A program made the position numbers and the translations under genes. A stretch of 64,000 bases of DNA from Octopus sinensis. Its lineage: Eukaryota. Of the stretch, positions 5,261 through 35,083 are shown piece by piece. The notes beneath the pieces were generated by a model. That model saw only the letters and a list, made by a program, of their open reading frames with translations, ran no database searches and was not told where the DNA came from. Position 1 is the first letter of the stretch. Every line of letters begins with the position of its first letter. The stretch is from positions 1-64,000 of the forward strand of contig NW_021832127.1 in assembly GCF_006345805.1 (NCBI RefSeq). Reading direction: 5' to 3'.

Positions 5261-5321
5261 CAATTTCGGATTTAGACCAATAGATAAATTATGTCTGCTA
5301 GCTTCATATGAGGTATTAATA

Positions 5322-7265: not shown

Positions 7266-7269
7266 GCGG

Positions 7270-9894: not shown

Positions 9895-10856
9895 GTTATG
9901 AGTTGTTCGATATTATCTTGATATTTCCTCCGTTTCGTGGTATTGTTAATCAATTCCTCCGTAGCGAGCCTTCTTTGTTTTGTATTGGCTGTATAGTTCA
10001 TGGCTATGTTGCCAAATATTTTTTGCATACGTATCCGAGCTACTGTTTTCTGTGGTCGCTATTTGTAGCGGCGCCTCCGTAAGAGCGTGAGTCTATAAGA
10101 GAGTCCTTGTGTGTATTCTGACATAGTATATAATCTATTTGATTATATATTGTGATCTCCTTCCCGCTTCGGTCTTCCTATAGCCAGTCCACGTCGTCTT
10201 ATGCCTGGCAGGATGTTGAAAGGTCGTAATGCAGAGATAGAGATCAAATGCCAGGCAAAACCCAACTAGAGAGTCTCCGGAAGAGTTTCGGTAGCCTCTT
10301 CCATGGCTACCAATGCATATTTCATCATTTTTCTTAATGCCTGCTTGGCATTCCATTCTCCCGTCAGAAATAGGACTGTTGTCTTGTTTAATACGTTGCA
10401 TAATTCTAAAAGGCTTGCGTAAAATTTGTCCAACTCATCAGAAGCAACCAACAGTCTCCCCGTATGGAATGCATACACGTTGATGATGGGAAAATTTTAC
10501 TTCCTTTCGATTTCAGTTTGATTTGAAGAATCGCGATGCGGTTATTAACACTCCAGACTTTGAGTTCCTCTTTTCCAGTGAGGCTCGAACAGCGAATCCC
10601 AATCCGTAGTGTCGGCACTCAGAGTGGAGAAATATAGGCGGTATTTTCCATAAGCTTCATCATTCCCTTCCGCGACCTTCGTCTCTTGAAGACAGCACAC
10701 ATCGACCCCGTAACGGTCTAGGTCGTCGCATAAGGTATTCCGTTTTGACTTCGCTGATAGTCCTCTAACATTAAAAGAAGCAATAGAAAGGCTCGATTGA
10801 ATAGAACATGTTTGAGACATATCAAAGAGAGGCACGTAACCACCTCAACCAATAAA
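9895..10856 (-). mobile_element. RTE-clade LINE, 5' half with APE endonuclease (frameshifted)
   Basis: IASFNVRGL, CCLQETK, LTGEWNAK, FQHPARHKTTW and NQIDYIL...SYGGAATNSDH. Probably the upstream half of the 5322-7265 element. Confidence 0.85.
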
Positions 10857-13548
10857 TTTTTTTTTAGTCTTTATTATATTTCAAATCAAAGAGAAATAGT
10901 CATTGGCAGATAGTCAGAGTATTGTCTCTGACTATTGCTATAGATATTCTTTCGATTAAATACGGTGCTCACACGGGTCGCCGGTAACCCTTTCGATTAA
11001 TGAGGCAATGCGCTGGAATAGGGTCCGAGTAGAAGGCCCCTGTATTCCTGACGTCTCAACAGCCAGGGGGAAAACACTCTCCCATTCCCGATTCCAGCGT
11101 ATTTCTCAGCTTTTCTCTTCTCTGCCCGTTCAGACGGGCTCCAGGATTCTCGATGCATAACTTGATGTTCTGATTGGAAAAGGAGTTCACATACGTGACG
11201 TCCCAAACCAGACACTTTCCCCTCTGAATGTAAATGTGGTCATCCATCGGGTCTTCTGCCGTCCTCTACGAAAATCCCTGCAGGTTCCAATTGTGTGTGG
11301 AATCCAGCAGTTCGAAGAGATCGACAGATGATCTGGTTCAGTTCGCAATGCCGTGAGGAACGTCCAATTCCGTTTCGACATGAGAGGGAGTGATATCTAA
11401 ACTCGTCAGTCCACATGCCGCACCGGCATTGGTGTTTTTCATAGACGCGTAGACCGAGGCGCAGACAAACTCCAATTCTTACGGCTTCATCATTAAGAAG
11501 GCAGCCAGTTGTATTACAAGGGTAACAGTTTAGCCACGCGCCGCTTAGGGGCTGGCTGCCCGCTTGTAAACAAGCCAACCTTCTCTGGTCCATGTTTTCC
11601 TTTAGGCATGAAAACGTATTGGCGTGGACTTTCGACGTCCACTCCGATTGGCAGGTCACATCAGATGGCAATGGCAATCCCAGCTTTTCCCATACGGCGA
11701 CGCAATCATCCACAGCAAATGATTTCCTCTGTTCGTTTATTTGAGAAAGAACAGTGTCGATCATATCTCTGGACGAGAGTACTGAGGAAAAATATGCGCC
11801 GTGCGCTGAATCTGCCGGGGTGATCAAGCCGATCCCTCCCAGGGAAATTGGAAGAGTCGCCTGTCTTCACGACTGCGTATCGAAGCTAACGTTGAGGATG
11901 TCCTCAGTGCAAGCTCTCATATGCTCGGAATAGTCTTCGAGAAGATCTGTTTCCTGATAGCATTGGGCCGTCCTCAAAAGATATGTTAACTTCGGAATAG
12001 ATAGACAGTTCCTCATTAAAAAGAGCCCAATGTGGCTATCCACACAACGTAATTTTTCAGAGAGAAGGGAAAATTCCGAAATTTTAGCCTTCATAACAGC
12101 TTTAATACCACTTTCAAAAATAGGAGATCCAAGAAAAATCAAGTCCTCTTTGAGGGGGAAGGTGCATCCAGGTAGCAGTTTGTCGAATTCGGTCATCCAC
12201 TTACGAAAGGAAAGTTCGTCCGTGTTGACATTCACAATTTCGCATTTGACGCAGTTGAATTCAAGCCCAAGCGCTCCAAAATTAAAAATAAGAGACTTCA
12301 GCGTTTCCAAGATGCCTTCGGGGGTTTCTCCAATTACTCCATCATCCAAATACCACATGTTAAGATCATTTTTACACGATCTCGTTGTTTGGTGAATTGC
12401 GAGGGAGATAATAAAAGAGGACCTAGAGGGTCACCTTGTTGATTCCATTGGCAGAATCAAGTATTGTTGTTCCGAATACAAGCGCGGAAGGCTTGGAGTA
12501 TGCCAAATTTACAATCGGTAGGATGTGCGGAATTTCTTTGGCACAAGCTTCAAGAATACAGTCTCTTCTAACAGAATTGAATGCATTCTTTAAATCGATC
12601 TTGGCCAGAATTTGTGGGAATCCGTGGAAAAAAAACAAACTCACGCAGAACGTGGACCCCGGCCTCAGCGCCTCCTCGGACACCAACTCCGAGCTGTGTT
12701 GGTACGAAGTACGACAGAAGTTCCCCAGAGCTGCCTTGCTTGCTATCTTGGAAGCAATCCTTCGGAAAATGTTTCCGACAGCAATGGGGCGAACTCCGCC
12801 ATCCGCCTTCTTTAGGGCCGTCAAACATGAGGAGAAGATCAGTTCACGGGCAAAAGAGCATAAGTCGCCGGACAGAATCTTGTTAGAGAGTTCGACGATC
12901 TTTTCGAGCAAGGTAGTATTGTTTTCCCCTGAGAGCCGACATATCAAATCACGAACATGCCCAGGCCTTAGGCCATCCACACCGCCAGAGCTGCTGCGGC
13001 GGAAGGATTTCAGGCTATCGGAGACGTCCGCGGCCGAGGCTACTAGTGGCATGACATTAGGGAGGTGGAATTCACGAAAGTCTTCAGGGGCGCTGGGATG
13101 TTTCGCTTTCAATGCAGAAACAGTAGCAGTGCTGTATGGAAGGGTGCCCAGGTCGGAAAATATGGTTCGTACAGCGGCCTTTACGTCTCCTTCCATGAGT
13201 TTTGTCCGTACCAGCCGCCGTATCCTTTCGGCCTCAGATGCCTTTGAAGGCCTTCTTTCAACTTTGTGCGTCCCTTCGGTAGGGGGGCAGAGGACGGACT
13301 CGAAATTGGACATGAATTCAGCGATCTGCGCTTTCAAAACTTTAGCAAGTGATTGCCCATCCCTTTGTTGCTGTATCGGGACGCCCAAAGCGTAGACGGG
13401 AAAGAGGAATAGTTTTGCCCATGAAAGGGCGTCGGAGTGTTTCTTCGTGGCATTTCCAATCAAGGTGGCAAGACTCTCTGCAGCAAGTAGCCTGACTGCC
13501 TTCGGAATCCTGACGGGGATATATCTGCACCGTCGCAAATCGGACAGA
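10857..13548 (-). mobile_element. CRE-clade non-LTR retrotransposon (RT + restriction-like endonuclease), 5' truncated, frameshifted
   Basis: GGVRPIAVG, KIDLKNAFNSV, QQGDPLG, WYLDDG, CRCG...HSLSC, GRRPDG and LVWDVT. The 3' UTR has a perfect hairpin (ATAGTCAGAG/CTCTGACTAT), AATAAA and an A-tail at ~10857. Confidence 0.9.
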
Positions 13549-13869
13549 TAAATAAATAAATTAATAATGAAGAATTTATTTTAGTTTGGAAATCTTAACA
13601 TTTTGTAAATTAAAGAAAAATGATTAATAGTTTTAATAAAAACTATTTTTACTCAAGATGAATTAGAATTTAATTTTATAACAAAAAAAAAGATACAATA
13701 AAATTTTGTTTTTTGTTTCTGTCTAAGCTGTAATTTTTTTAATAGTTTTTACTATTTTTTTATGTTTAACGTTTATAATGGATTTCTGAATTGTTTTTAT
13801 CATGAGCAGAGTATGAAATCTGTAAAGAAATTCAACAAGTTTAATTTTGTCTTCTAAAGATTTCGATCC

Positions 13870-14687
13870 TCTTTTTTAGTTCTCAAAAGAAGTGTTTAGT
13901 ACTAAGTGACATACCATCATAGCCAGCTGACTGATTGCTTTTGAGGTGTATGAATGCATTTGTACACCTCTCATCACTGTAGTTTTGCCTATAAAAGGTT
14001 TTGGATTCCTAATAAATTTAGGTATATTTTTTTCAAATGATTTAAACTGGGTCTCAAAGTGTTTGGGTGTATAGTTTACTTTATCCTCTGGGTTTTGTAG
14101 ATAATGGCCTGTGTTATAGCAGATTTTTAGTGACTTCTTCACAGTACCTTGTATAAGTAATTTGATAGCAGCAAACATTCGTCTTCCATATTGTCAGTTC
14201 TCAACTTGGTTGATTTATCATCTACTTATTTGTGCCAGAGGTCGTTTGATCTTTTCTTATCAAATGTGACATTTGGTTGCTTTTTTTATACTTTTATTCG
14301 AATTTGAAATTCCAAGTTGCAAGAGTTTCAAGAGTATTTCCCGGACAGTTGTTCGTTCATAGAGATTACCTGATATTTTTTTGTCAAGCTTTAAAAGTCA
14401 ACATTTCCACCGCCAAACGTAAATTTAGAGACGTAGTTTTTCTCTTTACACCCTTGATCCCAAAATATTGTTTAAGATTTAATCTAGCAACTGTCATCTT
14501 TTGGAAGCTTTCGAGAGGTTTTGATCACGTGATTTAATGTACAATTGAAAAAAAGATTAAATTAAAAATGTAAAAAATTGTTTTTCGTGTAAATTAATGT
14601 ACAAAGGGTGATTTATGTGAAAAAAGTTTTAAAATGACTTAAAATAATGGAAATTTTGGCTTGTCCGGTTACTTTTGTCGTGCACTG
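13870..14687 (-). mobile_element. Tc1/mariner-like relic
   Basis: TA-CAGTGCACGACAAAAGT terminus at 14687 facing left. Internal coding is too decayed to confirm. Confidence 0.4.
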
Positions 14688-14689
14688 TA

Positions 14690-15020
14690 GGTCATCAGCT
14701 TAGGCGAGAATGATTGAGTCTTCCATTTCAGGGTTAGGAATGTCAGATAGGTACAAATTGAATAGAGCAGGAGAAAGGGGGGAGTTTTGAGGAACTCCAT
14801 TTGGAAGCAATCTTGAGATTAATTTGATTCCATTCAGGGATACACATCCTCTCCCTTGTTTTCATAATGACGGTATCACATTTTGGTTGATCGAGTAGTT
14901 GACGATAGCTGTCAGAATGGTAACTCCTTCGTCGCCAAAATTTTTTAATAGGATGATCGAGATTTTTTCTCTACTGCATAAAAGCTGTTCTAACTCTAAT
15001 TCGGAAGGTCACAGGATATT
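14690..15020 (-). mobile_element. Jockey/I-like RT fragment
   Basis: GVPQNSPLSPALFNLYLSDIP...ADD on the minus strand, similar to the RT at 30994-32151. Confidence 0.7.
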
Positions 15021-15134
15021 TTCGAAGCGAAGATGTCTCCTAGAATTTTGTTAGTTATTGTTAAAAATTATAATTCACAATATACGCTGTTAATTTTTAA
15101 ATATATAATTATCGCTTTCACATAAACAATTGAA

Positions 15135-15590
15135 CTAATATTATTAGCAGGATACCCAGCCGTACTTGAACCGGTCGGGCTTGACCGAGGAGATGGAAAA
15201 CGTCCTGATGGGATCACAATTTTCCCATTTGAAGAGGGGAAACAACCTGTGTGGACACTCTCTGCCCGTCCAACATTGCCGGGAGCGCAGTGGACAGACT
15301 GTATGCCGCGGAAAAAACGATGAGGGCAAAGGAGAGAAAATATGAAGCGCTGCGAGATCGATTCGTGTTCTGTCCGATTGTGGTCGAGACAACTGGAGGA
15401 ATAAGTGGGAAATCGCTCCGCTTCCTAAAGAAGCTTGGACGCTTAGCCACATTAAAAAGCCACGACACACGTGAGACCCGGTGACTTCTCAGTTGATCTC
15501 TGTTGCTATCGTGAGAGGCAACGCAACGTCAATTATGTTGGCGGGGTCCACTTCGGATAGATGGCTTTGTTAACTTCTAGTAAATTACAG
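15135..15590 (+). mobile_element. CRE-clade LINE 3' fragment
   Basis: EPVGLDRGDGKRPDG, PIVVETTGG and ISVAIVRGN. The 3' end is shared with 56111-56212. Confidence 0.85.
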
Positions 15591-15693
15591 TAACTTTTGA
15601 ATCAAAATAAATTTTATATTATTAGCTAATTTATTATTAAATGTAAAATATTTTTAAACTGTATTAAATAGCTTTACTGTTTGTTAGCTACTT

Positions 15694-16118
15694 ATGGTAA
15701 ATTACTTAATATTTTTATTAGGCCAAATCACATTTTTCATATGAAGACCAGAAATCAATAAACGAATTTGTTCGTCAACATACGAAATATCAAACACTTA
15801 AGCAGAATATACTTGAATACGAAGTTATTATAAAAATAATACTTTCAGGGAGAATTTGAGAAGATTGATACTGCTGAAATGGATTTAATGATGATGGAAG
15901 AGGGGGAAAATATACTTTATAACATTGGAGGAACTTTCTATTACAAAAAATACGATCAGGCATTGGAATTCCTCAATCAAGCTAAGAAAGAGTGTGAAGA
16001 GGCTTCAAATTCTGCTCGAAAACAAATGAATGAGATCGTTGAAGCGATGGATAATATTAGGAGTTCAATTTATGCAAAATTTAGCAAGGATGAAATTAAT
16101 ATGGACTATGAACTTTAA
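15694..16118 (+). CDS. PFDN4: Prefoldin subunit 4
   Basis: ATG-only first exon and two 25-nt introns. Protein M-AKSHFSYEDQKSINEF...YNIGGTF...IYAKFSKDEINMDYEL matches the PFDN4 pattern (EDQ..IN.F, Y.IG..F, YAKF..IN). Confidence 0.88.
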
Positions 16119-16219
16119 TTAAATTTTCGGATTTAAATCGTTTTCAAGCTATTTTAAAATGTGTTACTATAAGTGAACAGGGGAGTAATAGAATAAAAAT
16201 ATAAAAACGAATATAGTAT

Positions 16220-16545
16220 CGAAAATAATGGTACTAGTGGGTTTCAAGAAGGTATCAGTAGCTACTTCCTTACAAACTTAGTAGAGATCTGGAAATTCTT
16301 GTTAAACAAATAGCAAATTAATTTATCTCAAATTAAGTGTGATAAATGCAAGATAGAAATTTTGTTTTTTGCATACACAAGATCGCTATGGATTCATTTC
16401 CAAAACAGGCAAACAGATGTCCATTTAGCCACCGGTGTAATAAGATGCTAAACAGTAATTACCTCCGAATATATAATGAGGTTGCAAAGTGTATCCACTT
16501 TCACTTGTGTATAGAATCAAACGAAGATTGCCGACTATATTAAAT
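16220..16545 (+). pseudogene. Possible decayed RLE-type LINE C-terminal relic
   Basis: MQDRN...CNKML.SNYLRIYNEVAKCIHFHLC resembles the R4/Dong/NeSL zinc-knuckle region (Y..RHN.VAK.IH..LC). Confidence 0.3.
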
Positions 16546-16606
16546 TATTCTACCTTCTCTACACTCTGCCTACTATCTCAAACTAAGGTAAGACTTGAGA
16601 CATACA

Positions 16607-16990
16607 ATGAAAATCAGAAAATCAATATGCAAGTTCCCCACGTGTTTGCACCCAATCGACCTGATTTTTTCAGGAAAACCGTCACCCATGATTGTCAACT
16701 ATATTAATTTGTTCGACCTTCTCTTCACCCTTCCTAACATCTCAAAATATCTTCATGATACTTTGTCTTATGTTTTGAGGCCTATCATGAAAATCAGAAA
16801 ATCAATATGCGAGTTATTCACGTGTGTGCAAGTCATCGATCTGACCTTTCAGGAAAACCGTCCCCAAGGATTATCAATCATATTAATTTGTTCCGCCTCC
16901 TCTACACAATTTTTACCATCTCATACTAAAGATTCATGATACTTGGTCTCAAGATTTTATACTTACTATAAAAATCAGAAAATCAATATT
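16607..16990. repeat. Diverged ~180-bp tandem repeat (about 2.1 units)
   Basis: AAAATCAGAAAATCAATAT recurs at ~16610, ~16790 and ~16971, with internal blocks (TCAGGAAAACCGTC, TATTAATTTGTTC) repeated at the same spacing. Confidence 0.85.
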
Positions 16991-16999
16991 CTAGTTGTC

Positions 17000-17345
17000 A
17001 AAGAAATGTGGAACAGCATTCTTTGGACCTAAAACAAAGAGATGTAACGGCCTAACAAAGAGGTAAAAGTTGTGGAGAGATTTCTAAATTGCTGAAATTA
17101 TCAAAAAGTACAGTTTGGAATATTATTACCGACGAAAACAACACTGAACTGCTATTAATCGACCAAGATCAGGTCCTCCGAAAAAAATAACTCAACGTTA
17201 TTGTTCATTTAAAAAAGAATAATCGGTACAAAGCCTCAAATTATTTAAAAAAATTGGCCGACGATTTAAAGATTACAGGAACATCAGTATCCCATCGTAC
17301 GATTACTTCTGCACTATTAAAGAAAATAGAAATTTCTGCACGAAT
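17000..17345 (+). pseudogene. Tc1-like transposase N-terminal HTH relic
   Basis: QHSLDLKQR...GKSCGEISKLLKLSKSTVWNII...RPRSGPPKKIT. Confidence 0.7.
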
Positions 17346-19087
17346 TAAATATGTCATATATCAACCAAAAATATTTCACTGATTTCAAGTCAGATAATAT
17401 TGATTTGTTTCTAATATTAATCAATATTATAAAATTCAATGTTTTGTTTAAAAATTAAAATAAATATTAATTTTTTTAATGGCTCAACATAGATTCATAT
17501 ATTTTGCTACTTTGTATTCAATTTGTAGTTTTTTCTTTGGAATAATTGGCTTTTTATTTTATAGTAAACTATTTTGCTGATACCTTTGATGTAGATTCAT
17601 CATCAATGAAGAAATATCCTGCTCTAAATTGGATCAAACCTCTATTTATAATTCTTTTCATTGTCTTTAGAATTTTTTCGACTGAATACTGGATCAAATA
17701 TGTATCATATATGATTAATCGAGTAAAAAATTTGTTTGTTTTTACCTGATTAGAACAAAATAAATGAGATGAGGTATAATTACTGTTGTTAAAAAATAGC
17801 TATACAACAGAAATGCCTCCATCATTTAGCATTGCTTTAACAATGCCGAATCCTGATATGCATCCTGATGCCAATCCAGCGCCGATTTATACAGAAGCAA
17901 TCGAAAATATCAAACAAGGAATTTTCTTTAATGTATCGAATATTTAAACGATTTTTAACCAATTTATATCTAAATTTTTCTCTATAAATTTATGATTCAG
18001 AAAATATTTAAAAAGGTGTGTGATTGCGGTTTATTTATAACCAAATTTAGTTATCTAATCAAAACAAATTTAGTTTTATACATTTTAAACTAACTTTTTA
18101 GTCTTTGTATTGAATAAATTTTTTCTCGTTTTGACTGCGTATCCCAACATTCGATTAAACTTTTATTAACTCGCTTCTCCAAAATTTAAAATTTTCGCTA
18201 GATATTTACTGATTTGTTAACAATTTTCACTATCATTTTTGAAATATATTCAGGATCTCAGTTATCTGATTTTTTTGAGTTATCTCGGGATATTGTTTAT
18301 TGTTTGTGAAAAACTTAGCTATTCCGTCTTTACACCTCATTAGCCTTCTCATAAAAGTTTAACAATTTTAGTGCTATATGGCTGAATTTATGCAGTTTCT
18401 TCAACTAAACTTAGCTTATTTTCAGAATCGGTACATACTCGTTAGTCATTGTTAAATATTGGGCCATCATTATTTTGATCTTTTATTTCGAATGCCAACC
18501 TATACTTATTCCAATTAATCTATGTTAATTGTTTTTCATTATTTTGGTAGGTAAAAATTTTTGTATTTAAAATTAAAATAATAAGATCTCCACATCTGCT
18601 TTGAAATAAGTTTTGATTTTAGAGAAAGTATAAAATTTTTCCAATCTGGGAATTTGTTACTATTAAATAACCAGTTCGATAATCAGTAACATAAATTTGA
18701 CTCAGTCAAACAAACGAAAAAATGCACACATGGTCTTTTCATTTATTTTAATAGGGTTTGAGACGTATAATTTAGCCACACTTAGATAATTACTAAAATT
18801 TTACTAGAGATAGCAAATGAAGTTGAAGATCATTTTTTAAACTTTCGAGAGTTAAGGATACGTCCACTTATTTGTCTACCTCAGATGAAGGTGATTAGGG
18901 TCGCAAACTTTTTGATCAATAATTTTTTTAGTATTTTTTAGAAATAACCAATACCATAATTCGTAAATTCCATTTTAATTGTTGTTAGAATATGTCGCGA
19001 GCGCAGCGAGCGACCGAGCGCAGCGAGCGACCACTCAATTTCTAGATCCGATCAATCAAAAAATCTATAAATTGACAAATACCCAGG

Positions 19088-21012
19088 AATGGAATGGAAT
19101 TTTATTGTAAGCAAATCAGAGACTTAGTGAAAAGGTTGGACGAGGTTAAACGAGACGACTGCAAGGACAGTCGAGCTCTACCGAGATTCGTCCTAAGAGA
19201 GTATACGAGCCGGCCTTTGATTAGAGTCACTCTCTGATTGAGTTTCGGACACGATCCACAAAAAGATCGGACACCTGAGACCTCCGACGAAAGATTCGGA
19301 TGGAATCGAGGATGACATTCTTGATTAGTGGAAATTTCCCCTCTGCCCAGCTGGGTAGCGGCGCGCGTAGATCCAATCTGTACGCTAGCTTAACGCATAG
19401 CGTCGGATCTTCTCATACTTTTTTAAAATTTTTTCGAATTGGTTTGAATAGTGCCACGCCTCCATCCCATACAAGAGACTTGGGAGAATCGTCACGCGAA
19501 AGACAAACAGAAAAGTGTCAGGGGCCAAATGCATACCCCTCAGGAAGCGAAGGGCCGCAACGGCCTTTTTCCTTTTCTGAGTGACGTGCAGTAAGTACTC
19601 CGAGTTAGCGTCTACCGTCAAGCCCAGATAGCGAATATGGCTTGTGCGGGGAAGTCCTCTGAGAATCTTAGGTTCTTGCCTCGGTTTGCGCCGTGAGTTA
19701 ATTTCAAGGTACGCCGACTTGTCCATAGCAATGGACAGTTGTTTACCCTGACACCAGGTCTCTATCATTCCGATGTAGCGGGAGAGACGGTGCTCGGAGA
19801 GTGCAGGGCTTTTTGAAATATCCATAATGAGGACGTCATCTGCATACAAGAGAAAAGTTGTCCGCGGATTGGGAAGGAAGGAAAGCTGCTCATCACAAGG
19901 TTGAACAGCAGCGGGCTGAGACTGGATCCCTGCGGGACACCCCTTCGGAGACGAATATCTCTGGAGTGGAAGCCCGACTGGGACACAAAGGAGATACGGT
20001 TTGAAAGAAAGCAGTTCAGCCAGAGAAATGCCTCTCTCGTTGGCTCACATCCGCGGACCACGTCCAATAGGTCAGAGTGGGATACGCTGTCGAATGCCTT
20101 AGAAATGTCAAGGCAGATGCAGATAAAGTTTCGTTGAACTCAATTGCTTTCAAAGCCATCGATTGGAGAATCAGAAAACAATCGCCGCAGCTGCGCCCTG
20201 AGCGGAAACCCCACTGCTGGGGCAGAAGCACGCTTTTCTGCTCTGCGAAGGAGTCGAGGCGTTTGGTCATAATCTTTTCCATAAGCCTCGAGATCGTTGG
20301 TATTAGACTTATGGGTCGGTAGCTGCTGGCCAGGTTAGCTGGTTTTGCAGGTTTCTTGATCATCCGGATTTCGGCGACTTTCCAGGCACTTGGAACGTGG
20401 CTCCAGCGAAGACTAGCCGAGAAGAGGCGTGCCAAAAACTCAGACAGTTCCGGAGGGCCTTCTTTGAACATTTTCATTGGTAGCATGTCATGCCCCGGTG
20501 CGTTGTCCCTCGCCGAGAGGATGGCCCAGGTCACCTCAGCGGCGGTGATTGGGTGATGGTCAACAGATAGGGAGTCTGCTTGGTCTATAGGACTGGCATG
20601 TGAGTTTCCCCAGCGATCCTCATGGTCCGGCAGAGGACGGTCCAGGTGATCAGCAAATATGTTGGGGATTTCCTCCACCGACGCAGGCAATCCAGCTGAG
20701 TTCGATAATTCTGGTGCCGGAGAGTTCACGAGATGATTAGAGAGTCTGTTGTAGGCTATCCAGAAGTTTGGGTTCCTGTGATTAAGACCAGAGCAGGCCT
20801 TCTTCCACATCCTCTCAAGATCTTTCTTTCTTGTGAGTTCAATTTTGTGGTTGAGCAGAGAGATTTCCGACCTTAGGGTATTTTGGTCCGTTGGGTCGGC
20901 ACAGCGTTTGAGCTTGTTTCGCAGGCGTTTCTTTTCGCCCAGAAGTTGGAGAAGTTTGGGGTTTTGATGTGTAATGCCCTTGCTAGTTGGGCGCACCCTC
21001 CTAGCGTGGGCT
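19088..21012 (-). mobile_element. Jockey/I/R1-like LINE copy A (RT only, 5' truncated)
   Basis: SYRPISL, QWGFRSGRS, GVPQGSSLSP and YADD. AATAAA plus (CATTC)n tail. 13-bp direct repeat ACAAATACCCAGG at 19075-19087 and 21013-21025. Confidence 0.9.
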
Positions 21013-21025
21013 ACAAATACCCAGG

Positions 21026-23056
21026 GAATGGAAAGTTTTATTGTAAGTAAAACAGAGACTAAGTAAAAAGGTTGGACGAGGTTAAACGAGACGACTGCGA
21101 AGACAGTCGAGCTCTGCCGAGATTCGTCCTAAGGGAATATATGAGCCGGTTTTTGAAGAGTCACTCTCTGATTGAATTTCAGACGCGATCCACGAAAAGA
21201 TCGGTCACCTGAGACCGCCGACGAAAAGTTCGGATGGAATCAAGGATGACTTTCTCGATTAGTGGAGATTTCTCCTCTGCCCAGTTGGGTAGCGGGGCGC
21301 GTAGATCCAATCTGTACGCTAGCTTTAACGCATAGCGACGGATCTTCTCACATTTTTTCAATATTTTTCCGAATTGGTTTGAATAGTCCCACGCCTCCAT
21401 CCCATACAAGAGACTTTGGAGAATCGTCGCGCGAAAGACAAACAGAAAAGTGTCGGGGGCCAAATGCATACCCCTCAGGAAGCGAAGGGCCGCAACGGCC
21501 TTTTTCCTTTTTTGGGTGATGTGCAGTAAGTACTCCGAGTTAGAGTCTACCGTCAAGCCCAGATAGCGAATGTGGCTCGGGCGGGGAAGTCTTCTGAGAA
21601 TCTCAGGCTCTTGCCTCGATTTGCGCCGTGAGTTAATTTCAAGGTACGCCGACTTGTCCATAGCAATGGATAGTTGTTTACCCCGACACCAGGTCTCTAT
21701 CATTCCGATGTAGCTGGAAAGACGGTGCCCCGAGAGTGCGGGGTTTTGAAATATCCATAATGAGGACGTCATCAGCGTACAAGAGGAAAGTTGTCCGCGG
21801 ATTGGGGAAGGAAGGGAAGCTGCTCATCACAAGGTTGAACAGCAGCGGGCTGAGACTGGATCCCTGCGGGACACCCCTTCGGAGATGTATCTCTTGGAGT
21901 GGAAGCCCGACTGGGACACAAAGGAGATACGGTTAGAAAGAAAGCAATTCAGCCAGAGAAATGCCTCTCTCGTTGGCTCACAACTGCGAACCCTGTCCAA
22001 TAGGTCTGGGTGGTACACGCTGTCGAATGCTTTAGAGATGTCAAGGCAGATGCAAGATAAAGTTTCGTTGAACTCCATTGCTTTCAAAGCCATCGATTGG
22101 AGAATCAGAAAACAATCGGCGCAGCTGCGCCCCGAGCGGAAGCCCCACTGCTGGGGCAGAAGCACGCATTTCTGCTCAGCGAAGGAGTCGAAGCGTTTGG
22201 TCATAATTTTTTCCATAAGCCTCGAGATCGTTGGTATTAGACTGATGGGTCGATAGCTGCTGGCAAGGTTAGCTGGTTTTGCAGGTTTCTTGATCATCCG
22301 GATTTCGGCGACTTTCCAGGCACTTGGAACGTGGCTCCAGCGAAGACTAGCCGAGAAGAGGCGTGCCAAAAACTCAGACAGTTCCGGAGGGCCTTCTTTG
22401 AACATTTTCATTGGTAGCATGTCATGCCCCGGTGCGTTGTCCCTCGCCGAGAGGATGGCCAGGTCACCTCAGGCGGCGGTTGATTGGGTGATGATCAACA
22501 GATAGGGAGTCTGCTTGGTCTATAGGACTGGCATGTGAGTTTCCCCAGCGATCCTCATGGTCCGGCAGAGGACGGTCCAGGTGATCAGCAAATATGTTGG
22601 GGATTTCCTCCACCGACGCAGGCATTCCAGCTGAGTTCGATAATTCTGGTGCCGGAGAGTTCACGAGATGATTAGAGAGTCTGTTGTAGGCTATCCAGAA
22701 GTTTGGGTTCCTGTGATTAAGACCAGAGCAGGCCTTCTTCCACATCCTCTCAAGATCTTTCTTTCTTGTGAGTTCAATTTTGTGGTTGAGCAGAGAGATT
22801 TCCGACCTTAGGGTACTTGGTCGTTGGGTCGGCACAGCGTTTGAGCTTGTTTCGCAGGCGCTTCTTTTCGCCCAGAAGTTGGAGAAGTTTGGGGTTTTGA
22901 TGTGTAATGCCCTGCTAGTTGGGCGCACCCTCCTAGCGTGGGCTTCCAAGTAGAGTCGCATGAAGTCCGTCAATTCGGCGCCCGAGTTGTCGATGTCCGA
23001 GGTAGATTGATAGCTGCCTGGCGTACGTTGTTGCGAAAGAACAAGTTCAGAGCATA
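21026..23056 (-). mobile_element. Jockey/I/R1-like LINE copy B (close paralog of A, longer 5' end)
   Basis: Near-identical to A along its length, with CLDISKAFDSV and YADD. Tail AATAAAACTTTCCATTCC. Confidence 0.9.
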
Positions 23057-23067
23057 ACGATACCAGG

Positions 23068-24765
23068 TAGGTAGGTAGGTAGGGTAACAACTTTATTTAG
23101 GTAACAACGAATAGTATGTGGGGTAATAATTAATGAAACGGTAAGGCTTGCTTACCGACTTCTTCCGCGAAACAAAAAGAAAAGAGGGACCCAACGTCTC
23201 AGTATAGAATTACCTTTGCAGGTAAGTCCCAGTGACTGTTGACCAAGTTTGTAGTTTTTGATGCCTTTTTCAACGATTTCCCCCACCGTGGGCGTTTTAG
23301 CCTCGAGCCATGGGGGAATCGGGCATTCCGGGCTTTGGGAGTAGGCGATTTTTAACGCCAGTCTCCGAGTTTTTTCGAACTTCTCGATAATGGAACTCCT
23401 CTTTCTAGAGAAGTACCATGCTCTTTCCCAAATATAAGTCCTGGTAAGATCACCGTGTTAAAACATAAAGGAAAGTATCTGGTTCCAGATTAAACTTTCT
23501 TAGGCAAAACAGAGCGTTTGTTGCTTTCTTTTTCCGAATTTTCGCATATTCAGTGTATTTACCATTTCTTCAATTTGCAATCCCAGGTATTTTATTGAAT
23601 GTGTCGTGGTATGTTAGTAATCAGACATGGTGAATTTTTAAGATTTCTACTTTCTGTGATTCTCAACAGGGCAGACTTCTCACGTGCGACAGTCAGCATG
23701 TTATTTCTGCACCAATGTTCGATCTCTTCCATATATGACAGCATTCGTTGTTCAGATAAGGCAGGTTTCGGTGAATGATGAAACATCGAGGATGACCACA
23801 TCATCCGCATATATTAGAATTTCCGTCCGTACATCATTTGGAGAAGGTAGATTACTCATTACAAGTTGAATAACAGAGGACTGAGTACTGATCCCTGGGG
23901 GACACCTCTTTTTAATTTTAGCTCATCCGAGTCATGGTTCAGTAAGCTAACCACTGATCGTCTGTCGCGGAGGAAGTCCTGTAGCCATAGAAACAGTTCT
24001 CTATCTATCTGACACTCCGCCAGATGTCTCAGAAGGCCAAAATGCCATACACTGTCGAATGCCTTCGAAATGTCAAGACATGCCATCGTCAGAGATCCCT
24101 TGGTATCCAGAGCCTTCATAATTAACGAATTAACCGTATAATGACAGTCCCCACAAGAGCGATTTCTGCGGAAACCCCACTGCGCATTTTTTAAAATATT
24201 TTTGCTCTCCACATGTTCCGAGAGTCTCCACAGCAATATCCTTTCCATGATTCGGCTGATGGTAGGAATCAGGCTTATCGGCCTATAGCTTGTTGGCAAG
24301 TAGAGTAGCGAGGTTTTCCTGGCTTCAGTATCATCCTAACCTCCGTTAATTTCCAGGAGGAGGGGACGTATCCCAGATGAAGACTACAGGAGAAAAGACA
24401 TCTCAAATATTCATAAAGTTCCCTCGGTGCTTCTTGAACAATCGCATTGTTATCTTGTCTTCCTGGGGCATTATCCTTCGAGCATTTTATTGCGTCCTCC
24501 ACGTCTTTGCAACTTATAGCTATCGTGCACAAAGGCAACGAGCTGAGGAGTCCATCCAATTCTTTTTCATATGACACAGTGCTGGTCCAGATAACAGTAA
24601 GTCCGGGTTGACCTCCTGAGTTCCTTTAAGACTGTCTCCAAATATATTTGGTATTCTTCAAGAGAAGCAGGAATCCATCTTGATTTAACAGTTTCGGTAT
24701 TGCTTCCTCGGATTTTGAAGTGGATAATTTCCCGAAAACTTTCCAAAAGTTAAAAATCGATGGCT
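23068..24765 (-). mobile_element. Jockey/I/R1-like LINE copy C (distinct family)
   Basis: SYRPISLIPTISR, CLDISKAFDSV, GVPQGSVLSP and YADD. AATAAA plus (CCTA)n tail. 11-bp direct repeat ACGATACCAGG at 23057-23067 and 24766-24776. Confidence 0.88.
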
Positions 24766-25283
24766 ACGATACCAGGCTTGTATTTGGGATTAAATTATTC
24801 GATAACAAAATTAAAATCGATGCCAAAGCAGAATGAGCTTTAAAACCGATTTCATAAATAAAAATAATATTTTTAAATTTATAATTGATATTTAGAATAA
24901 TGAGAAAAAATCTAAATGCTTATAATTTATAAAATGTAAAAAACAAGAATCTTCTGAAGGAGCAAGCCTGTCTGCACAGTCATTTTGATTAGAAGACCTA
25001 ATTTTAGAGATTAAAACGAAAAAATAGCAATGAGATCTGTCAAATATTACCCCCCTCAAACCTAAACCAAATTAGCGTTCAGTATTCATTGATTTTACTT
25101 TTTCTATTAAGGTCTACTTATAAATTATTTATGGGATTCAATGGAAAACTTAAGTTATTTCAATTTTAATTTTAAATCATGTAAAATTTTAAATAATTTA
25201 ATAAATATATTTGTTGATGATAGGCTTGTTAGGTGTCAAAGTCGCGTCTAGCGCTCGTCGCGCGCTGCGCTCGCGACAGAATA

Positions 25284-27099: not shown

Positions 27100-29760
27100 C
27101 ATGATTTCCTTTAATAGAAACATATATTTATGTGCTGCAAACAAGAGAGTTGTTAGCTAATGGCCTCACGAGACGCTCAGACAGCCTCGCGAATAGCAAA
27201 GTCATTCTTGATCGATATACATTCCAAGAGCCAAGATGACTCTTTGGAATCGTGTCTTATTCTTGATATTCGTCGACCGATGGAGCGAAGGAAGGGAGCG
27301 TCTTTAGGCCGAAGATCTTTAAAGACTCCAAAGCAATTGGGGTAAAAAGAAGTGAATTAGAGAGGTCCCCGTATTTGAGAATCTTACGATCCTCGGCCAG
27401 TCTCGAAGCGTTTTTAAGATTCGATAGCGGACAGGGCGAGACATGTCTAAGCAGGTGGAGTCGAAATAAGAGATTTCCCCTGTTTGTAAGGAAAGGTGGT
27501 CATGCCGTCTCCTCTATCCAGTTCAATCGGTTCGAGGATTGACGGGACGCCCGCGTAAGCGATGGCTCTCTGAATGATTGCGTTGAGTTCACTGTGGAGA
27601 GGGGCACGACCGGCATTCCGACGGCAAGAGAAAAAGTGCATTTCTCCCACGGTGGCATTTGTACGCCTGACAGATCTTCATCACGGAAAGAGATTGTGAT
27701 TCTTAAGCAATCGTTTTCCACCAGATTTCCGATGGAAGGAAGAAGGAGAGCCTTTAACCAAGCACCGCTGCTTTGGCAGCGACTTGAACGTAAGCAAGCG
27801 ATTCGGTGTTGATTGGAGACAGGGGCCTGGGCTTCGAAAGTCGCCTGAAAAGAGATCTCGTCCCACTGCCGCTGAATAGATAGAGAATTGGCCAGCCTCG
27901 GACCAAACCGGGCTTCCCACCTACCACAAGCAGTCGAGTAATTTTCAATTTCCGTTCGGGGAGGTTCCTGAGAACGATGTCTGAAAGAGGACAAAAGCAG
28001 AGTGAAAGGATAGGAATGCCGAGGGCCAGATCGGAATAAGATCTAATGCCAAGGCCGCTCCAGCGCACAGGTAAAGATTGCAAAATGAGCTCGTACCTGA
28101 GGATATTGTCAAGGTCCAAAAGAAGGTCACCCCTGTAAAAACAGGGTGCATATCTCAACGTGTAAAGGATCTTGGGGGTAAAAAGGTAGTTTCAGAAAAG
28201 AAAAGGAGCCACATGAGGCTCGATGTCTTTGAGCTTCTTAACGACTTTGGATAGATTTGGGATTTTTCTAGACAGTGAGCCTTCAAGGGCAGAAAGACCC
28301 ATGGAAGCACCGAAAATCGTCAGATTCGGTTTGACTGTAATTCGAACGTCGGAAAGAATACTTCGGCATGTGGAGGTTGCGGCACTAAACAGAGTTGGAT
28401 TTAGATGAATGTTCCCAATTTGGAAATTGTCCGTATTTATAGATAGGCTGATGTCCGAAAGGGAAGGGAGAATAGTGCGGAGGTCGTCGAAAACGACATC
28501 GGGAAGACCACAAATAGCTGCGTCACCCAGGTACCAAATGTTAATAGGAGATCAGACAGAGTGGGCAATATTATTAACGCTCAGAGCAAAAAGCTCAGGT
28601 CCTATGGGATCACCCTGCTGGACCCCGGGAGACGAAGAGACAGACACGTCGTCGAACATAAAAATGCTTGGGAAAGCATATGAGAGATGCAAAAAAAACC
28701 ACTTCGTGGCAGCGCTCCAGCAGGTGGAATTGAATGCGTTCTAAACGTCGAGTTTAACCATGATTAACTCCTAAAACGATTCCAATAATTCACAAATCGA
28801 ATGAACAGCCAGCGGTGATGGGGAAGTCAAATCTTTTGGATGACCGGGCCTTAGGCAAACTCCACCACTGCTTCCTAGAGAAAAGTTCCTCAGGGCTTTC
28901 AACAGCAAGTGTGGCAGGGGACGGCTGAGGTCTAAAGTCGAGGTGCTGAGAGGGATGTTTCTCCCTGACAGAATTCAAAACGGCTGGTTTCGGGAATAAA
29001 ATGAAACTCGTTGAGGCGACAAGCCTGACAGCTCCACGAACAATGAGTTTGCTGTTTATCTTTCTGTCTGAGTAGTCGTCATCATTCGCAAAAAGGGGCG
29101 CGTTATAGGAGGTTGGACCAGAGGGAGTCTCTGAATTAACGAGATAGGCATTCAACAGCACTCGTCGTACAAGGGCAATTCTTGTTTGACGATCGTAGCA
29201 AGTGAGGGGGAAGAAGTTTTATTACAGATTCTGGATGGGACTAAAGAAACAAAGCAGAACACCTTAAGCCAATCGGATTGCCATCGGAAGGCAAAACATC
29301 ATCAATTACAGTGGAAAAAAAGAAGCTGCTAGGATGCGAACAGCTTTACGGATTCTTGACGGAATTTGCCGGAGACGGAGGAGGAGTTTGGTGGATTTGA
29401 GAACGAAAAAGATAGAATGAGTCCAGAAATGGACTCTGAGAACGGGAAGGAATCTTGTGCTGAAGAGGATGCGGAAGAGTATACCCATTGAACACAAACA
29501 CAGGATCTCCTTTCCTTCTTCCACCCCTTCTCTGGCACTTTCGACCTTCGAGAAGGTGCAGTCCAGCGCCTCTCGCTGACTAAATATCAGGAAAAGGTTG
29601 GATTGGCGAGTATGAAACAAGACACTCTCCAGAATCCTCCTAAGAACAGTTGACTGCATATAAGCCTGTAGAGACTTATCTACACCCATCTGTCTTAAGT
29701 ACCGCTTTCTGGACCGCCTCAGGCCATACTTATTGCAGAGAAGAAGATGGGGGACCTCAC
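27100..29760 (-). mobile_element. CRE-clade LINE, degraded
   Basis: KLDV*NAFNS, QQGDPIG, WYLGDA, GAWLKAL, LDRGDG and IAVETSG. Many frameshifts and deletions. Confidence 0.85.
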
Positions 29761-30315
29761 CACCTCGTTGTGACACGCCTCAACTCGTTGAGGTCCCATT
29801 TGGGAGCTCGTTTCCGACGAAGTAAAGTACGCACCAAGAAGGGAGTCTTTCCCTTGAAACCATTGCTCACATTCGGAATGTGCCCAGTCAGCGCTTCCAG
29901 CTCGGCCTTTCTTGCGGCTATCTTAGCGGCAATGTTCTCCTCGGGGCAGGCCTCTGGGTGATTTCAATCATAGGATAACTCGCTACTCTAGTGCTCGTGT
30001 TGTTCAGGACACGGGGGCATCCTGACGGCGTAACCGCAGCGGCAGTCCTCCCCCGCGAGCCAGGAGGAGGGGTCTAGGCCAGCTTCTTCAGTGCATCTAA
30101 CGATAGGTTCGAGCTAAAGCGTCGATTGAAGCACTCAAACAGGGTAGGCCACCCATTTCTGGGCATCCTGGAAGCTCTTCCCAACACTTGGGAAAGGGCG
30201 GATTTAACCCAGTCCTCCCAGGTCGTGCACTCAATCCCTTCTGCAATGGCAAGGACGATATTCTTGCTATCGGACGTCTGCCTCTTCGATGCGGTTGTCC
30301 ATCCTTCTCTAGCTA
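29760..30315 (-). mobile_element. Possible LINE ORF1 (gag-like) relic
   Basis: GC-rich segment with a weak Cys/His motif (NHPEACP). Confidence 0.25.
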
Positions 30316-30925: not shown

Positions 30926-32130
30926 ATTATTATTATTATTATTATTATTTAAGCCAAAAACAGAATCACCGTCTTAACCATTAACTAACGTGATCAGGTG
31001 ATTCCGACACTTCTCAACAGTCTAGCCATCTTTTCACGATGTCCAGACCGTGACCCCACACACTTTCTGTATGTACGGTGAAATGCTTGTGGTCCATCTC
31101 CACGATCCCTCCCACTTGCCTCTACAAGAGACTCCAGTGTTCGATGGACAATTTTCATGTCGGTATGGTCCTTCAGTATGTTTATGGATTTTTCTTGGAT
31201 TTTCTCGATTTTTAGTTGGTTCGTTGCCGCCAGGTTACAGCCCCAAGCAGCACATGCATAGCCTATTGTTGGCTCGATATACTGCTTGTAAAGGGTCTCT
31301 ACCCCTGGCGGACAAGTTCTCCCACAGTTCGAAAGAAAGGCTTTCACAAGATTGATTTTCTTTATACAAGTTGACACGATCGATTCAACATGAGGTGAGA
31401 AACAGAGGAAAGTGTCAAACGTTACACCCAATATCTTCTGTGTTTTCTTTTGTGGTATTGGGACTCCATTCAGCGTGACTTCAATAGTTTTCGTCCCCAT
31501 CTTCCTGTTTTTCGTGAATAGGGTGACTGCTGACTTTTCGGAACATGCATGTAGTCTGTTTTCATATAGCCATCCATATAATTCGTCCAGTATTCTTTGT
31601 AGTCTTTCCTTCGCGTATTCGACATTTACATCCCTTGATGCGACAACTATGTCATCGGCATAGGAGAGTAGTATGTCATTATTATCCATAGGAACCGGGA
31701 GATCATTCAGAAACAAGTTGAAGAGGGTCGGGGATAAAGGAGAACCCTGGGGTACACCATTGGGCAAAAAGCGTGATCTTGAACTCTCGTTCCCGACGCA
31801 CACTTTCCCACGACGTCCGCTCAAAAAATTCGCTATCCATAGCTTCATAGGTGTAGAAATATTTGTACCAAATATCTTTTGAATTAGGATCTTCCTTGGG
31901 ACGGAGTCAAACGCTTTTTGAATGTCGATAGTGCATACAATTGATTTCTCCTGCAATTTCTTCTTTTTGTGTCCTTCATTTATGAAATCTGTTAGTGTGG
32001 TGAGGAAGGAGGTCGTTGACAATCCTTCCTTGAATCCATGTTGAAATGTGGATTGTGGGAGGAAAGGGCGAATATGTTTTAGGACCAGTTTTTCTAAGAT
32101 TCTTGACAGCACACATATAAGGGATATTGG
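30926..32130 (-). mobile_element. Jockey/I-like LINE, 5' truncated, intact RT core ending ...RSVGIT*, (AAT)n tail
   Basis: PISL, QHGFKEG, IDIQKAFDSV, GVPQGSPLSP, YADD and ILGVTFD. It interrupts the Tigger transposase frame. Confidence 0.9.
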
Positions 32131-33671
32131 TGTCCAAATTTTCTTTCTCACTGTTAACTAAAAAATTTGAACTAGGAATCTGTTGCCGACAGTTATTAAT
32201 TGTTTCCCAACAATTCGTTATTGTTTCAGGATTTAAATTTTGCCATGTTTTTCCAACAATTATTATGACATGACGAAGATTTATTTTTTTTAAATTAACA
32301 ATTTGTAACTCAACGTCCTCAAAATAAAGAGTAAAATCCAATAAAGCGTTAAGATAATTGGACTTGAAAGATTTAATAATACCCATGTCTAACGGTTGAA
32401 TTAATGAGGTTGTATTTTTTGGGAGAAAAAACAATTCAATGTTGGAAAGATGGATATATTTGTGACAGCTTGCGTTATCAAGTAACAAAACAATTTTTCT
32501 CTTTTGCGTAATCATTTGTTCATTTGTAATGGTGAGCCATGTAATAAATATTTCTGATGTCATCCAACTGTTTTTAGATGATGAATATGAAACTCCATGT
32601 TCTTCAGGGTTAAAGTTTTTCATACAACGTGGGGATTTATATTTTCCTACTAACAATGGCTTCAATTTTTCGCCACAAGCACTGACCGACAAAAGAATAG
32701 TGAATTTTTCTTTACTCCTTTTAATTCCGAAACAATCTTCATCCGAACTTACAAATGATTTTGAAGGTATCCTTTTAATATATAACCCAGTTTCGTCGCA
32801 ATTAAAAATATTTTGAAGACCATATTCTTTTACGTATTCATCATACTTGGAAAAAAACATATCAAGCGAAGAAACATCGGAAGAGTTTTTCTCTCCACTA
32901 ATTGTCTTAAATGACAACATATGTCTTTTCTTAAATTTTTCCAACCAGCCATTGGACCCTTTGAACGCCGAATAATTCAACATCCTTGCTACTTTGGAAG
33001 CAATATTTTTTAAAAGAGGACCGGACACAGGAATAAATTCTTCCCTTGTCTTGGTGAAAGCCTCAAAAACAATTTTATCCAATTTTTGGGATAAAGTATG
33101 AGGAGAGCGTTGAATATTTCTGGGAAAATCTGTTTGAACAGCCCCAGTATTAAAAAAATTGAGATAATTTTTTTTAATACGTGACACAGCGCCTAAAAAC
33201 TTACATTAATAAAAAACCTTTACTAATTTTGTACTTATCTACAATATCTCGTTCAGTAAGATGTTTATTTTCACTTAATTCCTTGGCAATTTTGATCTTT
33301 AACTCAAGACTAAGCTTACGAGCCATAACAACAAGAATACAAAAATTACACGAGGCTTCCAAATGAAATTTTATATAATTAATTTTAATTTTAATAGCAA
33401 ATATGTATATAAATTAAAAATCCTGTGCCCCACTTAGAGGTTCCGGTAATTTCTAAATTTGGAAATTACCGCATAAAAATTATATCCTTTTCAAACTACC
33501 CCAAAAATAGAGGTTTCCCCAAAAATAGAGGTTCCCCAAGCCAGAGGTCTGCCCCAAATGGAGGTTATACTGTATTATTAATAATAATATTGTTAGTTTG
33601 TTCTTGTCCAGGTAGAGCACACATCGAGATATTAGCACGTTGCATAACAGACTATATTGAGGAATGTATTA

Positions 33672-35083
33672 TGTCGCGCCCCACGCTGGCGACCATACCA
33701 CGCCGGCGACCAAGGTGACCTACATAGTTGACAGCGTGACCTACATTGTTTGACATTCAATTAAAAACGAAAATAATTTATTATAAAAAGGGTTTAGCGG
33801 AATTTTAATTAGAAAAATGGTATCTTCCAAAAGATGTTGTATTAGTATAGTCTCAATCCTTAGGTTACGTGAAAAATGACAGTGAATACCAAAATATTGT
33901 AAATGCACTACTCCAAATACCCGTACAAACTACATCCAAATTCGAAAAATACAATGTTAATAAAAAAGTGAATCAATTTATGATAATTGATGATCGGTAT
34001 ATTTGATATTCCTAATTCATAGTCTTTAATTAAAGGACGATAATAATCAAAAACACAAATTGGTTATCTGTTTCGACAATGAAATGGAGATGAAGACACT
34101 GGCATTCACTATTCACCAAGAATGCCACTGGGGAATACTAAAGCTTCATAAGAAGTGCTGTGAATTTTATTTTACTGTGAAACGCCCTATTATCAAACAA
34201 ATTATAAAAGAATGCGAAATTTGTAAATTTGCTGCGCCGTTAAAAGTATTTTTCATTAAATTTAACACTGTGATTCATGAAATACTAGGTTATAATCTTA
34301 TTTATAATTTAGATGAAAATATTGAGGCATCGTTTGTCCAAGATGAACTCAATAGTATTATTATTATTATTTTAACCCAAGAATCACCAACAGTTAATTA
34401 GGGTAATTAATTAGGTGATTCCAACAATCCTCAAAATCTTTCTCAGCTTTTCCCGATGTTGGACTCTGGACCCAACGCAAGTGCAGGACGGGCGGGGAGC
34501 AGTTTTTGTGAGGAATTGGATCGGGGTGATGTGCTTCTGATTGTTGAAGTCTTTTGGCAGGTGGTCTTGTTGGATGGCTAAGAAACCCTTTCCATCTTTC
34601 TTAATAAGTAAATTTACGATGCATTTATTTTTAGAAACGAATAATAAAATTTTTAATTTCACTCCTCCAGACATGAATTCATCTTATTTTAAAAGAATGA
34701 ATAAAAAGATGGGAGTACACAGGTCAAAATATGATTTTGAAATAGGGAATGAGGTATAATTGAATAATAACAGTTTAGATTCGAATCTTAAAAGATTGTG
34801 GGATGAATCCGTCATTGAATCCCCATATGAAGAAAAGGGAAAAGTAAAAAATATAATGTCTAATAAAAGATTAATGGTTAGTTGTCTTTCCAAACATTTA
34901 GATTGAATTACGAAATGAAACCAAGATAGTTACTATGAATAGAGTTAAAAAATGTTAAGGTTTTTGAATATTTTGCAATTATCTTGAGTCAGTAATTAGT
35001 GTCAAACTATATGGGTCACCCTGTCAACTATGTAGGTCACCTTGGTCGCCAGCGTGGTATGGTCGCCAGCGTAGTTCGCGACA
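33672..35083 (+). mobile_element. Ginger-like DNA transposon, internally deleted
   Basis: ~80-bp TIRs starting TGTCGCG and 5-bp TSD TATTA. Integrase HHCC zinc motif (IHQECHWG...IKECEIC) after a 26-nt intron. C-terminal YDFEIGNEV. Confidence 0.8.
34360..34620 (-). mobile_element. 3' tail of a GIT-ending LINE family inside Ginger
   Basis: CVGSRVQHREKLRKILRIVGIT*, AATCACC...GGTGATT hairpin and (AAT)n tail. Confidence 0.8.

Follow-up and report, generated by a model that had tools for sequence, protein, structure and literature searches.

Three LINE copies from two sister families stacked at one short motif in a small inverted-repeat element of Octopus sinensis

Site-specific long interspersed nuclear elements (LINEs) are under development as gene-insertion tools. 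Those of the R1 clade (R1, TRAS, SART, Waldo, Mino, and Kibi) are of the apurinic/apyrimidinic endonuclease-like (APE) type, nick their targets in a sequence-specific manner and occur in tandem insertions, and in the microsatellite-specific members of the clade the tail of the element matches the target. Transposons are among the targets of specific LINEs, and almost every target-specific LINE belongs to the restriction-like endonuclease (RLE), Tx1, or R1 group (PMC4640811). Two LINE lineages, Keno and Utopia, are found at the same site in U2 small nuclear RNA (snRNA) sequence (PMC4640811). Tandems of transposable elements (TEs) can arise by double insertion, as in an R1 array with 33-nt ribosomal DNA (rDNA) spacers, jockey dimers, and P-element dimers (McGurk & Barbash, bioRxiv 10.1101/158386). 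The signature of this route is a copy of the target site duplication (TSD) in the tail-to-internal junction, together with different truncation points (bioRxiv 10.1101/158386). Here we describe a locus in a 64-kb stretch of Octopus sinensis DNA (the window) at which three LINE copies, A, B, and C, stand one behind the other at a single sequence motif inside a small element with terminal inverted repeats (TIRs).

The layout of the locus (Table 1, plus-strand coordinates of the window) was read directly and then checked by script. A, B, and C all lie on the minus strand, head to tail, each with its 3' tail at the low-coordinate end. Exact TSDs bracket two of the copies, 13 bp long around A and 11 bp long around C, and all three 3' tails join the plus strand directly after ...ATACC(C)AGG. 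A preliminary description of this DNA had claimed three minus-strand LINEs of two families within a TIR element of about 0.6 kb, with every tail abutting the same motif. This anatomy proved correct to the base, the element measuring 597 bp and the common plus-strand priming end being ...CCAGG. Since all three copies were primed from that same 3' end, the site was not chosen at random. The exact 9-mer ATACCCAGG has no further occurrence in the 64 kb outside the stack. We favor, with a probability of about 0.62, an origin by three separate target-primed insertions that were guided by a shared nick-site preference, each TSD recreating the target.

Table 1. Features of the stacked LINE locus and of the TIR element that contains it.
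Feature	Position	Strand	Remarks
Left TSD of host TIR element, GAATA	18988-18992	.	Same as 25279-25283; directly adjoins TIR
Left TIR, starts TGTCG (TGTCGCGAGCGCAGCG...), two 17-bp units CGAGCGCAGCGAGCGAC inside	18993-19031	+	About 28 nt align to right TIR with 1 mismatch and 1 gap
Left arm of 597-bp non-autonomous TIR element, putative target motif at its end	18993-19087	+	
Putative target motif ACAAATACCCAGG (CCTGGGTATTTGT in LINE sense), 3'-side TSD copy of A	19075-19087	-	13/13 match to 21013-21025; joined directly to A tail
LINE copy A, 1925 nt, 5'-truncated: RT, short 3' UTR, (ATTCC)-type tail	19088-21012	-	About 3 frameshifts, dead
Second ACAAATACCCAGG copy, 5'-side TSD of A and also 3' flank of B	21013-21025	-	
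LINE copy B, about 2031 nt, same family as A; 5' limit uncertain by about 3 nt	21026-23056	-	Frameshifts and stops, dead
ACGATACCAGG, imperfect motif copy at 5' junction of B, 3'-side TSD and putative primer of C	23057-23067	-	11/11 match to 24766-24776; joined directly to (CCTA)4 tail of C
LINE copy C, 1698 nt, sister family, 5'-truncated: RT, 3' UTR, (CCTA)4 tail	23068-24765	-	At least 4 frameshifts, several stops
5'-side TSD copy of C, ACGATACCAGG	24766-24776	-	
Right arm of TIR element, begins CTTGTATTTGG, ends in right TIR (25240-25278)	24777-25278	+	
Right 5-bp TSD of TIR element, GAATA	25279-25283	.	

A and B are 94.4% identical over 1944 nt, motif included (blastn). B reaches 112 nt further in the 5' direction (the extra sequence is 22945-23056), and A stops exactly at the motif. 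All three copies are cut off upstream of the reverse transcriptase (RT), and each is dead, carrying 2-4 frameshifts plus stops. RVT_1 is the sole Pfam match of the proteins stitched from them (E=1e-32 for A/B and E=1e-39 for C). C had been assigned to a family distinct from that of A and B, and its protein is in fact 39% identical to theirs over 520 aa. That alignment scores 330 bits, above the best scores of the two families against 5.8 billion database proteins (177 and 206 bits, identity at most 42%), so that A/B and C are sister families, closer to each other than to anything else known. Inheritance is then the simplest source of a shared target preference, a different picture from that of two families converging on one site.

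On the plus strand the tails read (GGAAT)3 at 19086-19100 and (AGGT)4.8 at 23065-23083. They had been described as ending in CC, but these nucleotides (CC in A/B, CCT in C) are part of the duplicated target and coincide with the register of the tail repeat over only 1-3 nt. Both families have an AATAAA 5-12 nt before the repeat tail (19088-19227, 21026-21165, and 23068-23190, minus strand) and a stem-loop 60-100 nt upstream of it, which in A/B takes the form GACGA...CGACUGUC-loop-GCAGUCG...UCGUC. The stem-loops in the 3' untranslated regions (UTRs) of A/B and C are not significant (fold z = -2.0, -1.2, and +0.5). The 5' ends of A and C both begin with AGCC, in LINE sense, right after the TSD (21009-21012 and 24762-24765). 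The AGCC of A is LINE sequence, since it is present internally in B, and its sharing with C is probably a coincidence.

Parsimony at this single locus favors a motif that belongs to the target and not to the LINEs. An exact 11-mer stands on both sides of C, which argues that a motif-like sequence adjoined CTTGTATTTGG before C arrived, and the TSD of B would leave such a sequence beside CTTGTATTTGG. If the motif is target, the empty site should read contiguously as ACAAATACCCAGGCTTGTATTTGG; if it is LINE-borne, the empty site should be AAATTG joined to CTTGTATT. The sequence 3' of the nick varies, being CTTGTATT for B and C and the tail of B for A. Because the 3' side differs between events, the constant part would lie 5' of the nick, inside the TSD, and each insertion would thus recreate the site on both of its sides.

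The 5' junction of B had been proposed to supply a near-copy of the site that was then used by C. This holds for ACGATACCAGG, which is not a clean TSD copy. In the simplest account B came first, either with an imprecise 5' junction or with a 9-bp TSD and one G indel, and the TSD of C takes in 3 nt of the B 5' end. The reverse order is less simple, as insertion of C first would need three changes in one copy while the older copies stayed identical.

The proposed mechanism starts from two sister LINE families of O. sinensis with a strong common nick-site preference, whose endonuclease would presumably be an N-terminal APE. The enzyme would cut the strand antisense to the LINE (the plus strand of the window) right after ...ATACC(C)AGG, and the freed 3' end ...AGG would pair over 1-3 nt with the RNA tail, (AUUCC)n for A/B and (CCUA)n for C, to prime reverse transcription. 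The plus-strand 3' end ...ATACC(C)AGG is extended in all three events, by AATGG... for A/B and by TAGG... for C; these cDNA starts continue the repeat units of the tails, which makes a primer-tail pairing of 1-3 nt plausible. The second strand would be cut 9-13 bp away, with the recognized sequence inside the TSD and so copied to both sides. B would insert first, into the 597-bp non-autonomous TIR element; A would next use the 3'-side copy of the site, and C would use the imperfect 5'-side copy. The outcome would be three 5'-truncated copies stacked head to tail, all of them now dead. The anatomy, the TSDs, the common priming end, the differing truncation points, and the sister relationship are observed; in this scheme we infer the type of endonuclease, the order of events, and the strictness and spread of the preference.

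B may simply have happened to land in the TIR element, or the element may be a dedicated target. By a rough estimate, a preference for 9 bp could by itself account for occasional triple hits if a few thousand insertions were made among ~20,000 sites in an O. sinensis genome taken as about 2.7 Gb; the TIR element need not be a dedicated target. Within the 64 kb the lineage has no further copies, and a different LINE found there carries an (AAT)8 tail beside an unrelated flank, so that the clustering is not a general property of the region.

Several points weigh against three guided insertions. The two copies of the motif that flank B differ, ACAAATACCCAGG on the 3' side and ACGATACCAGG on the 5' side, a mismatch that requires either of the two irregularities given above, the imprecise 5' junction or the 9-bp TSD with one indel. 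C seems further decayed than A and B, an awkward feature in a copy that would have inserted after B. The searches turned up no empty copy of the TIR element, and the placing of the motif within the element is therefore an argument from parsimony. The sister relationship of the two families makes the evidence less independent, and at this single locus the three events do not sample target choice independently, since A and C used sites made by B. The endonuclease, finally, was lost through 5' truncation in all copies.

A stricter version of target choice is possible, though we consider it doubtful. In it, a cephalopod LINE lineage without the hallmarks of the three known target-specific groups (RLE, Tx1, and R1) would be strictly specific for a single site, CCTGG(G)TAT, carried by a family of non-autonomous TIR transposons, and would have kept this target across a split now marked by only 39% protein identity. 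Were this true, the LINEs and the DNA transposon would form a long-lived partnership like that of Tx1L and Tx1D, and the arrays could in principle move with the host element. Such hitch-hiking of LINEs on the TIR element is pure speculation.

It is improbable that the motif comes from the LINEs themselves, as their 3' terminus or as read-through from a source copy, and not from target DNA. The stack would then have grown by repeated addition at LINE ends, or by RNA-to-RNA template jumps of the RT, without TSDs, and the 11-mer at 24766-24776 would be an extremely truncated copy of C. For a site-specific element the TSD and the element end are indistinguishable at a single locus; moreover, the blast alignment of A to B continues through the motif, and an AATAAA only a few nt before the tail makes an unusual 3' end region in both families. 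A LINE-borne motif, however, needs an 11-nt LINE fragment identical to the end of C plus four TSD-less events, whereas exact repeats around single elements are the classic signature of a TSD. Microsatellite tails normally stand at the very end of a LINE, and the motif forms a 7-bp inverted repeat, though a weak one, with the right arm of the element.

Equally small odds are given to a local hotspot that involves no sequence-specific endonuclease. Here a fragile or structured site, such as a small palindrome or a LINE/flank junction, would have been repeatedly nicked or broken, and any active LINE with a compatible tail would have primed at the broken site. All three events do have 1-3 nt of microhomology between tail and target, and the nick does fall within the loop of an inverted repeat. 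The latter had been pointed out in the preliminary description of the empty site, and the 7-bp stem with its 8-nt loop is indeed present. It is nonetheless weak (-3.9 kcal/mol, z = -1.3), 25 of 200 shuffled sequences folding as well, and a stability no greater than that of shuffled sequence speaks against any role for the hairpin. As a structural target it was rejected for this lack of significance. It is also absent as such at the sites used by A and C, where its arms are separated by B. Endonuclease-independent insertions usually lack regular TSDs, and one lineage alone used the site, though several other LINE types are present in the window. By comparison with Rfam, the target is not an RNA gene, and no RNA gene occurs anywhere in the window.

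The preliminary description had taken the copies for separate insertions and not for one tandem duplication, and in this it is supported by the exact 13-bp TSD of A, by a 5' truncation of A that differs from that of B, and by the non-uniform divergence of the two. A and B differ by 5 substitutions in the 5' 400 nt (1.25%) versus 34 in the last 340 nt, where divergence is 10-14% (chi-square p = 1.2e-4). Decay after a simple duplication should be even, so this pattern argues against one; different source copies or partial gene conversion would fit it better. A single insertion followed by tandem duplication of A and B through unequal exchange or replication slippage, with the position of C coincidental, is very improbable: the two copies are adjacent, co-oriented, and 94% identical, and the repeat unit of 1932-1938 nt takes in the motif, but unequal exchange between the flanking repeats of B would copy its full 5' end, whereas A is 112 nt short and ends at the motif, and the tail of C stands at the same bond with a TSD of its own, a coincidence of about 1 in the region length or worse. 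Each junction of the stack holds a TSD copy (13 bp at 21013-21025 between A and B, 11 bp at 23057-23067 between B and C), and the units are independent of one another in truncation, family, and pattern of divergence. The stacking of A, B, and C is best read as the already described double-insertion route to TE tandems.

The clade of these LINEs was approached through the architecture of their 3' halves. The open reading frames (ORFs) of A, B, and C end about 200 aa after the YADD motif, 110-150 nt before the tail. No C-terminal Cys-His motif is present in any frame of the three copies, and neither an RNase H nor an RLE domain follows the RT, where there is no room for an RLE. With the ORF ending near the RT and the tail within 150 nt, the RLE group (R2, R4/Dong, NeSL, CRE, and Utopia) is excluded. 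We infer an APE-type endonuclease from this exclusion and from relatives that carry PF03372/PF14529.

A Cys-His motif follows the RT in ORF2 of the R1 clade, and ORF2 of the L1/Tx1 type has a C-terminal Cys-His domain after the RT. The short C-terminus of the octopus ORFs would argue against both Tx1/L1 and R1. The nearest named relatives in the database are labelled jockey, X-element, or BS, and none is labelled LINE-1 or Tx1, which is indirect evidence on the clade; the R1-like character and the Tx1 membership raised in the preliminary description therefore find no support. In the Jockey/CR1-type architecture ORF2 consists of endonuclease and RT only, without RNase H and without a C-terminal zinc motif; the octopus ORFs, with RVT_1 as the only Pfam domain and a short C-terminus, agree with it. 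Their tails, short repeats and not poly(A), are more in keeping with the CR1 group than with Jockey. The data carry the placement no further than Jockey/CR1-like, and comparisons with PDB and Pfam gave no clade resolution. Three more distant relatives (L004, L005, and L010) were set aside as guides to clade or target, as they have different 3' ends and flanks and mixed architectures. L010 runs >1 kb past the RT to a Cys-rich motif, by eye RNase H plus a zinc motif, and the ORF1 of the distant relatives contains only a weak CCHC knuckle.

The known copies of A/B and C number three, all at this one locus. Searches of the window by blastn, tblastn, and scans for the motif and TIRs yielded nothing further of A/B, C, or the TIR element, and neither did three O. 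sinensis haplotig loci (L001-L003), whose match is confined to window positions 1-18463; the contig of L001 ends about 770 bp beyond this match. In the protein database no relative of either family exceeded 42% identity, so that no additional family copy is among them. Exact-protein look-ups of A, B, and neighboring ORFs returned no match, and the same was true of the A/B 3' UTR scanned against a metagenome collection and of a scan of a prokaryote-genome collection. Two metagenome matches to the reconstructed empty site, in unrelated GC-rich coding DNA, and two viral-contig matches to the TIR, in GC-rich sequence, were discarded as chance matches. These searches lend no support to the genome-wide site specificity or to the DNA-transposon safe harbor suggested in the preliminary description.

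The host element is recovered by joining 18993-19087 to 24777-25278, which gives 597 bp with 31% GC and no ORF. The first 16 nt of its TIRs are identical, against 0.04 chance matches expected. Its termini are TGTCG...CGACA, and its TSD is the 5-bp GAATA; a 4-bp reading gives AATA versus GAAT. Ginger elements follow the terminal rule TGTNR...YNACA (PMC2836005). In metazoans their TSD is 4 bp, CCGG/CCGT for Ginger1 and within RTATAY for Ginger2, and a 5-bp Ginger TSD is reported only for Dictyostelium TDD-4/5 (PMC2836005). Of the Ginger-like identity given to the element in the preliminary description, the termini fit but the TSD, at 5 bp and not the metazoan 4 bp, does not. The size, TIRs, and TSD of a miniature inverted-repeat transposable element (MITE) are present, in a single copy in the 64 kb and a further 57 kb of haplotig sequence. 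Since the element encodes no transposase and neither an autonomous partner nor a second copy was found, the name 'Ginger-like MITE' amounts to a guess, and 'non-autonomous TIR element' is the safe label.

The window is rich in AT, with 27-38% GC outside TEs, and is crowded with the remains of transposons. At its start it lies inside or beside a UPF1-like helicase gene, an exon-like ORF at 978-1424 (plus strand) encoding UPF1 zinc-binding and 1B domains (Pfam E = 1e-11). An intact RT ORF of 457 aa (RVT_1) at 5360-6733 (minus strand) is identical at three places (L001-L003) on two unplaced GCA_006345805.1 contigs. It is annotated as a RefSeq protein whose cluster mates are RefSeq Octopus sinensis proteins, and it may belong to a recently active LINE. 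Window positions 1-18463 are 97-99.8% identical to unplaced contigs, which are probably alternative haplotigs. The L001 haplotig differs from the window by indels of 0.4-1.2 kb, with breaks in the alignment near 8485-9725, 10985-11431, and 14539-15330; at 97-99.7% identity, these indels indicate dense structural polymorphism in a TE-rich region.

A different 5'-truncated LINE occupies 30926-33187 (minus strand). It contains RVT_1, is 27-34% identical to A/B/C, ends in an (AAT)8 tail next to an unrelated flank, and is inserted in the 3' part of a pogo/Tc5-type transposase ORF (DDE_1 and HTH_Tnp_Tc5), a case of ordinary nesting in contrast to the stack. A segment of >3.7 kb occurs twice, at 33038-36746 and again 26.5 kb away at 59503-64000, with 99.7-100% identity between the copies. 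The start of the first copy falls within the pogo-like ORF, whereas the second copy includes ~780 bp more, at 61303-62080, and continues past the end of the window. The pair is a young TE or a recent segmental duplication. ORFs with the pattern C-x-C-G...H-x-L-S-C-R...R-H...E-P lie at 11240-13538 (minus), 27500-29776 (minus), 37139-37756 (plus), and 40636-41324, and the stretches 28904-29432 and 40756-41324 are 70% alike. By eye this pattern resembles the Cys-His and restriction-like endonuclease region of RLE-type LINEs; Pfam gave no match. An ATG-initiated ORF of 299 aa at 48987-49886 (minus strand), with no Pfam match, contains a 273-bp tandem duplication of 91% identity (49233-49771), and its protein has two acidic DSDEDKD repeats.

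These dead copies, all from one locus, point to a previously undescribed LINE lineage with a preferred site. If genome-wide flanks confirm the preference, the lineage would be a target-specific one from a phylum in which none has been described. It might fall outside the R1, Tx1, and RLE groups, with a short, defined target conserved across two old sister families, and it would bear on how APE-type LINEs gain or retain sequence specificity and on TE tandems as seeds of satellites.

Among known systems, the stack resembles the double-insertion tandems in that a TSD copy is kept at each junction, the joins run from tail to internal sequence, the 5' truncations vary, and the TSD doubles a preferred target. 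It departs from the tandems cited above in comprising three events, in having two families with 39% protein identity at the same bond, in its cephalopod host, and in a target that lies in a small TIR element and not in rDNA or a promoter hotspot. Like Tx1L in Tx1D of Xenopus (Tx1 clade, L1 group), it places LINEs at a defined site inside a TIR DNA element. Unlike Tx1L, the octopus ORF lacks the C-terminal Cys-His domain of L1/Tx1-type ORF2, its named relatives carry jockey-type labels, and the octopus case is known from one TIR element. With the R1 clade it shares the match between tail and target as well as tandem insertion, and it is set apart from that clade by the missing C-terminal Cys-His motif, the early end of the ORF after YADD, and the low identity of its best database matches. 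As with Keno and Utopia, different LINE families have inserted at an identical position; those two, however, are unrelated and convergent (APE versus RLE), whereas A/B and C are closest relatives, so that their common site is more likely inherited. Target-specific LINEs and TSD-based stacking were thus known already, and what is new here is the host phylum, the one bond common to two deeply diverged sister families and, possibly, the clade.

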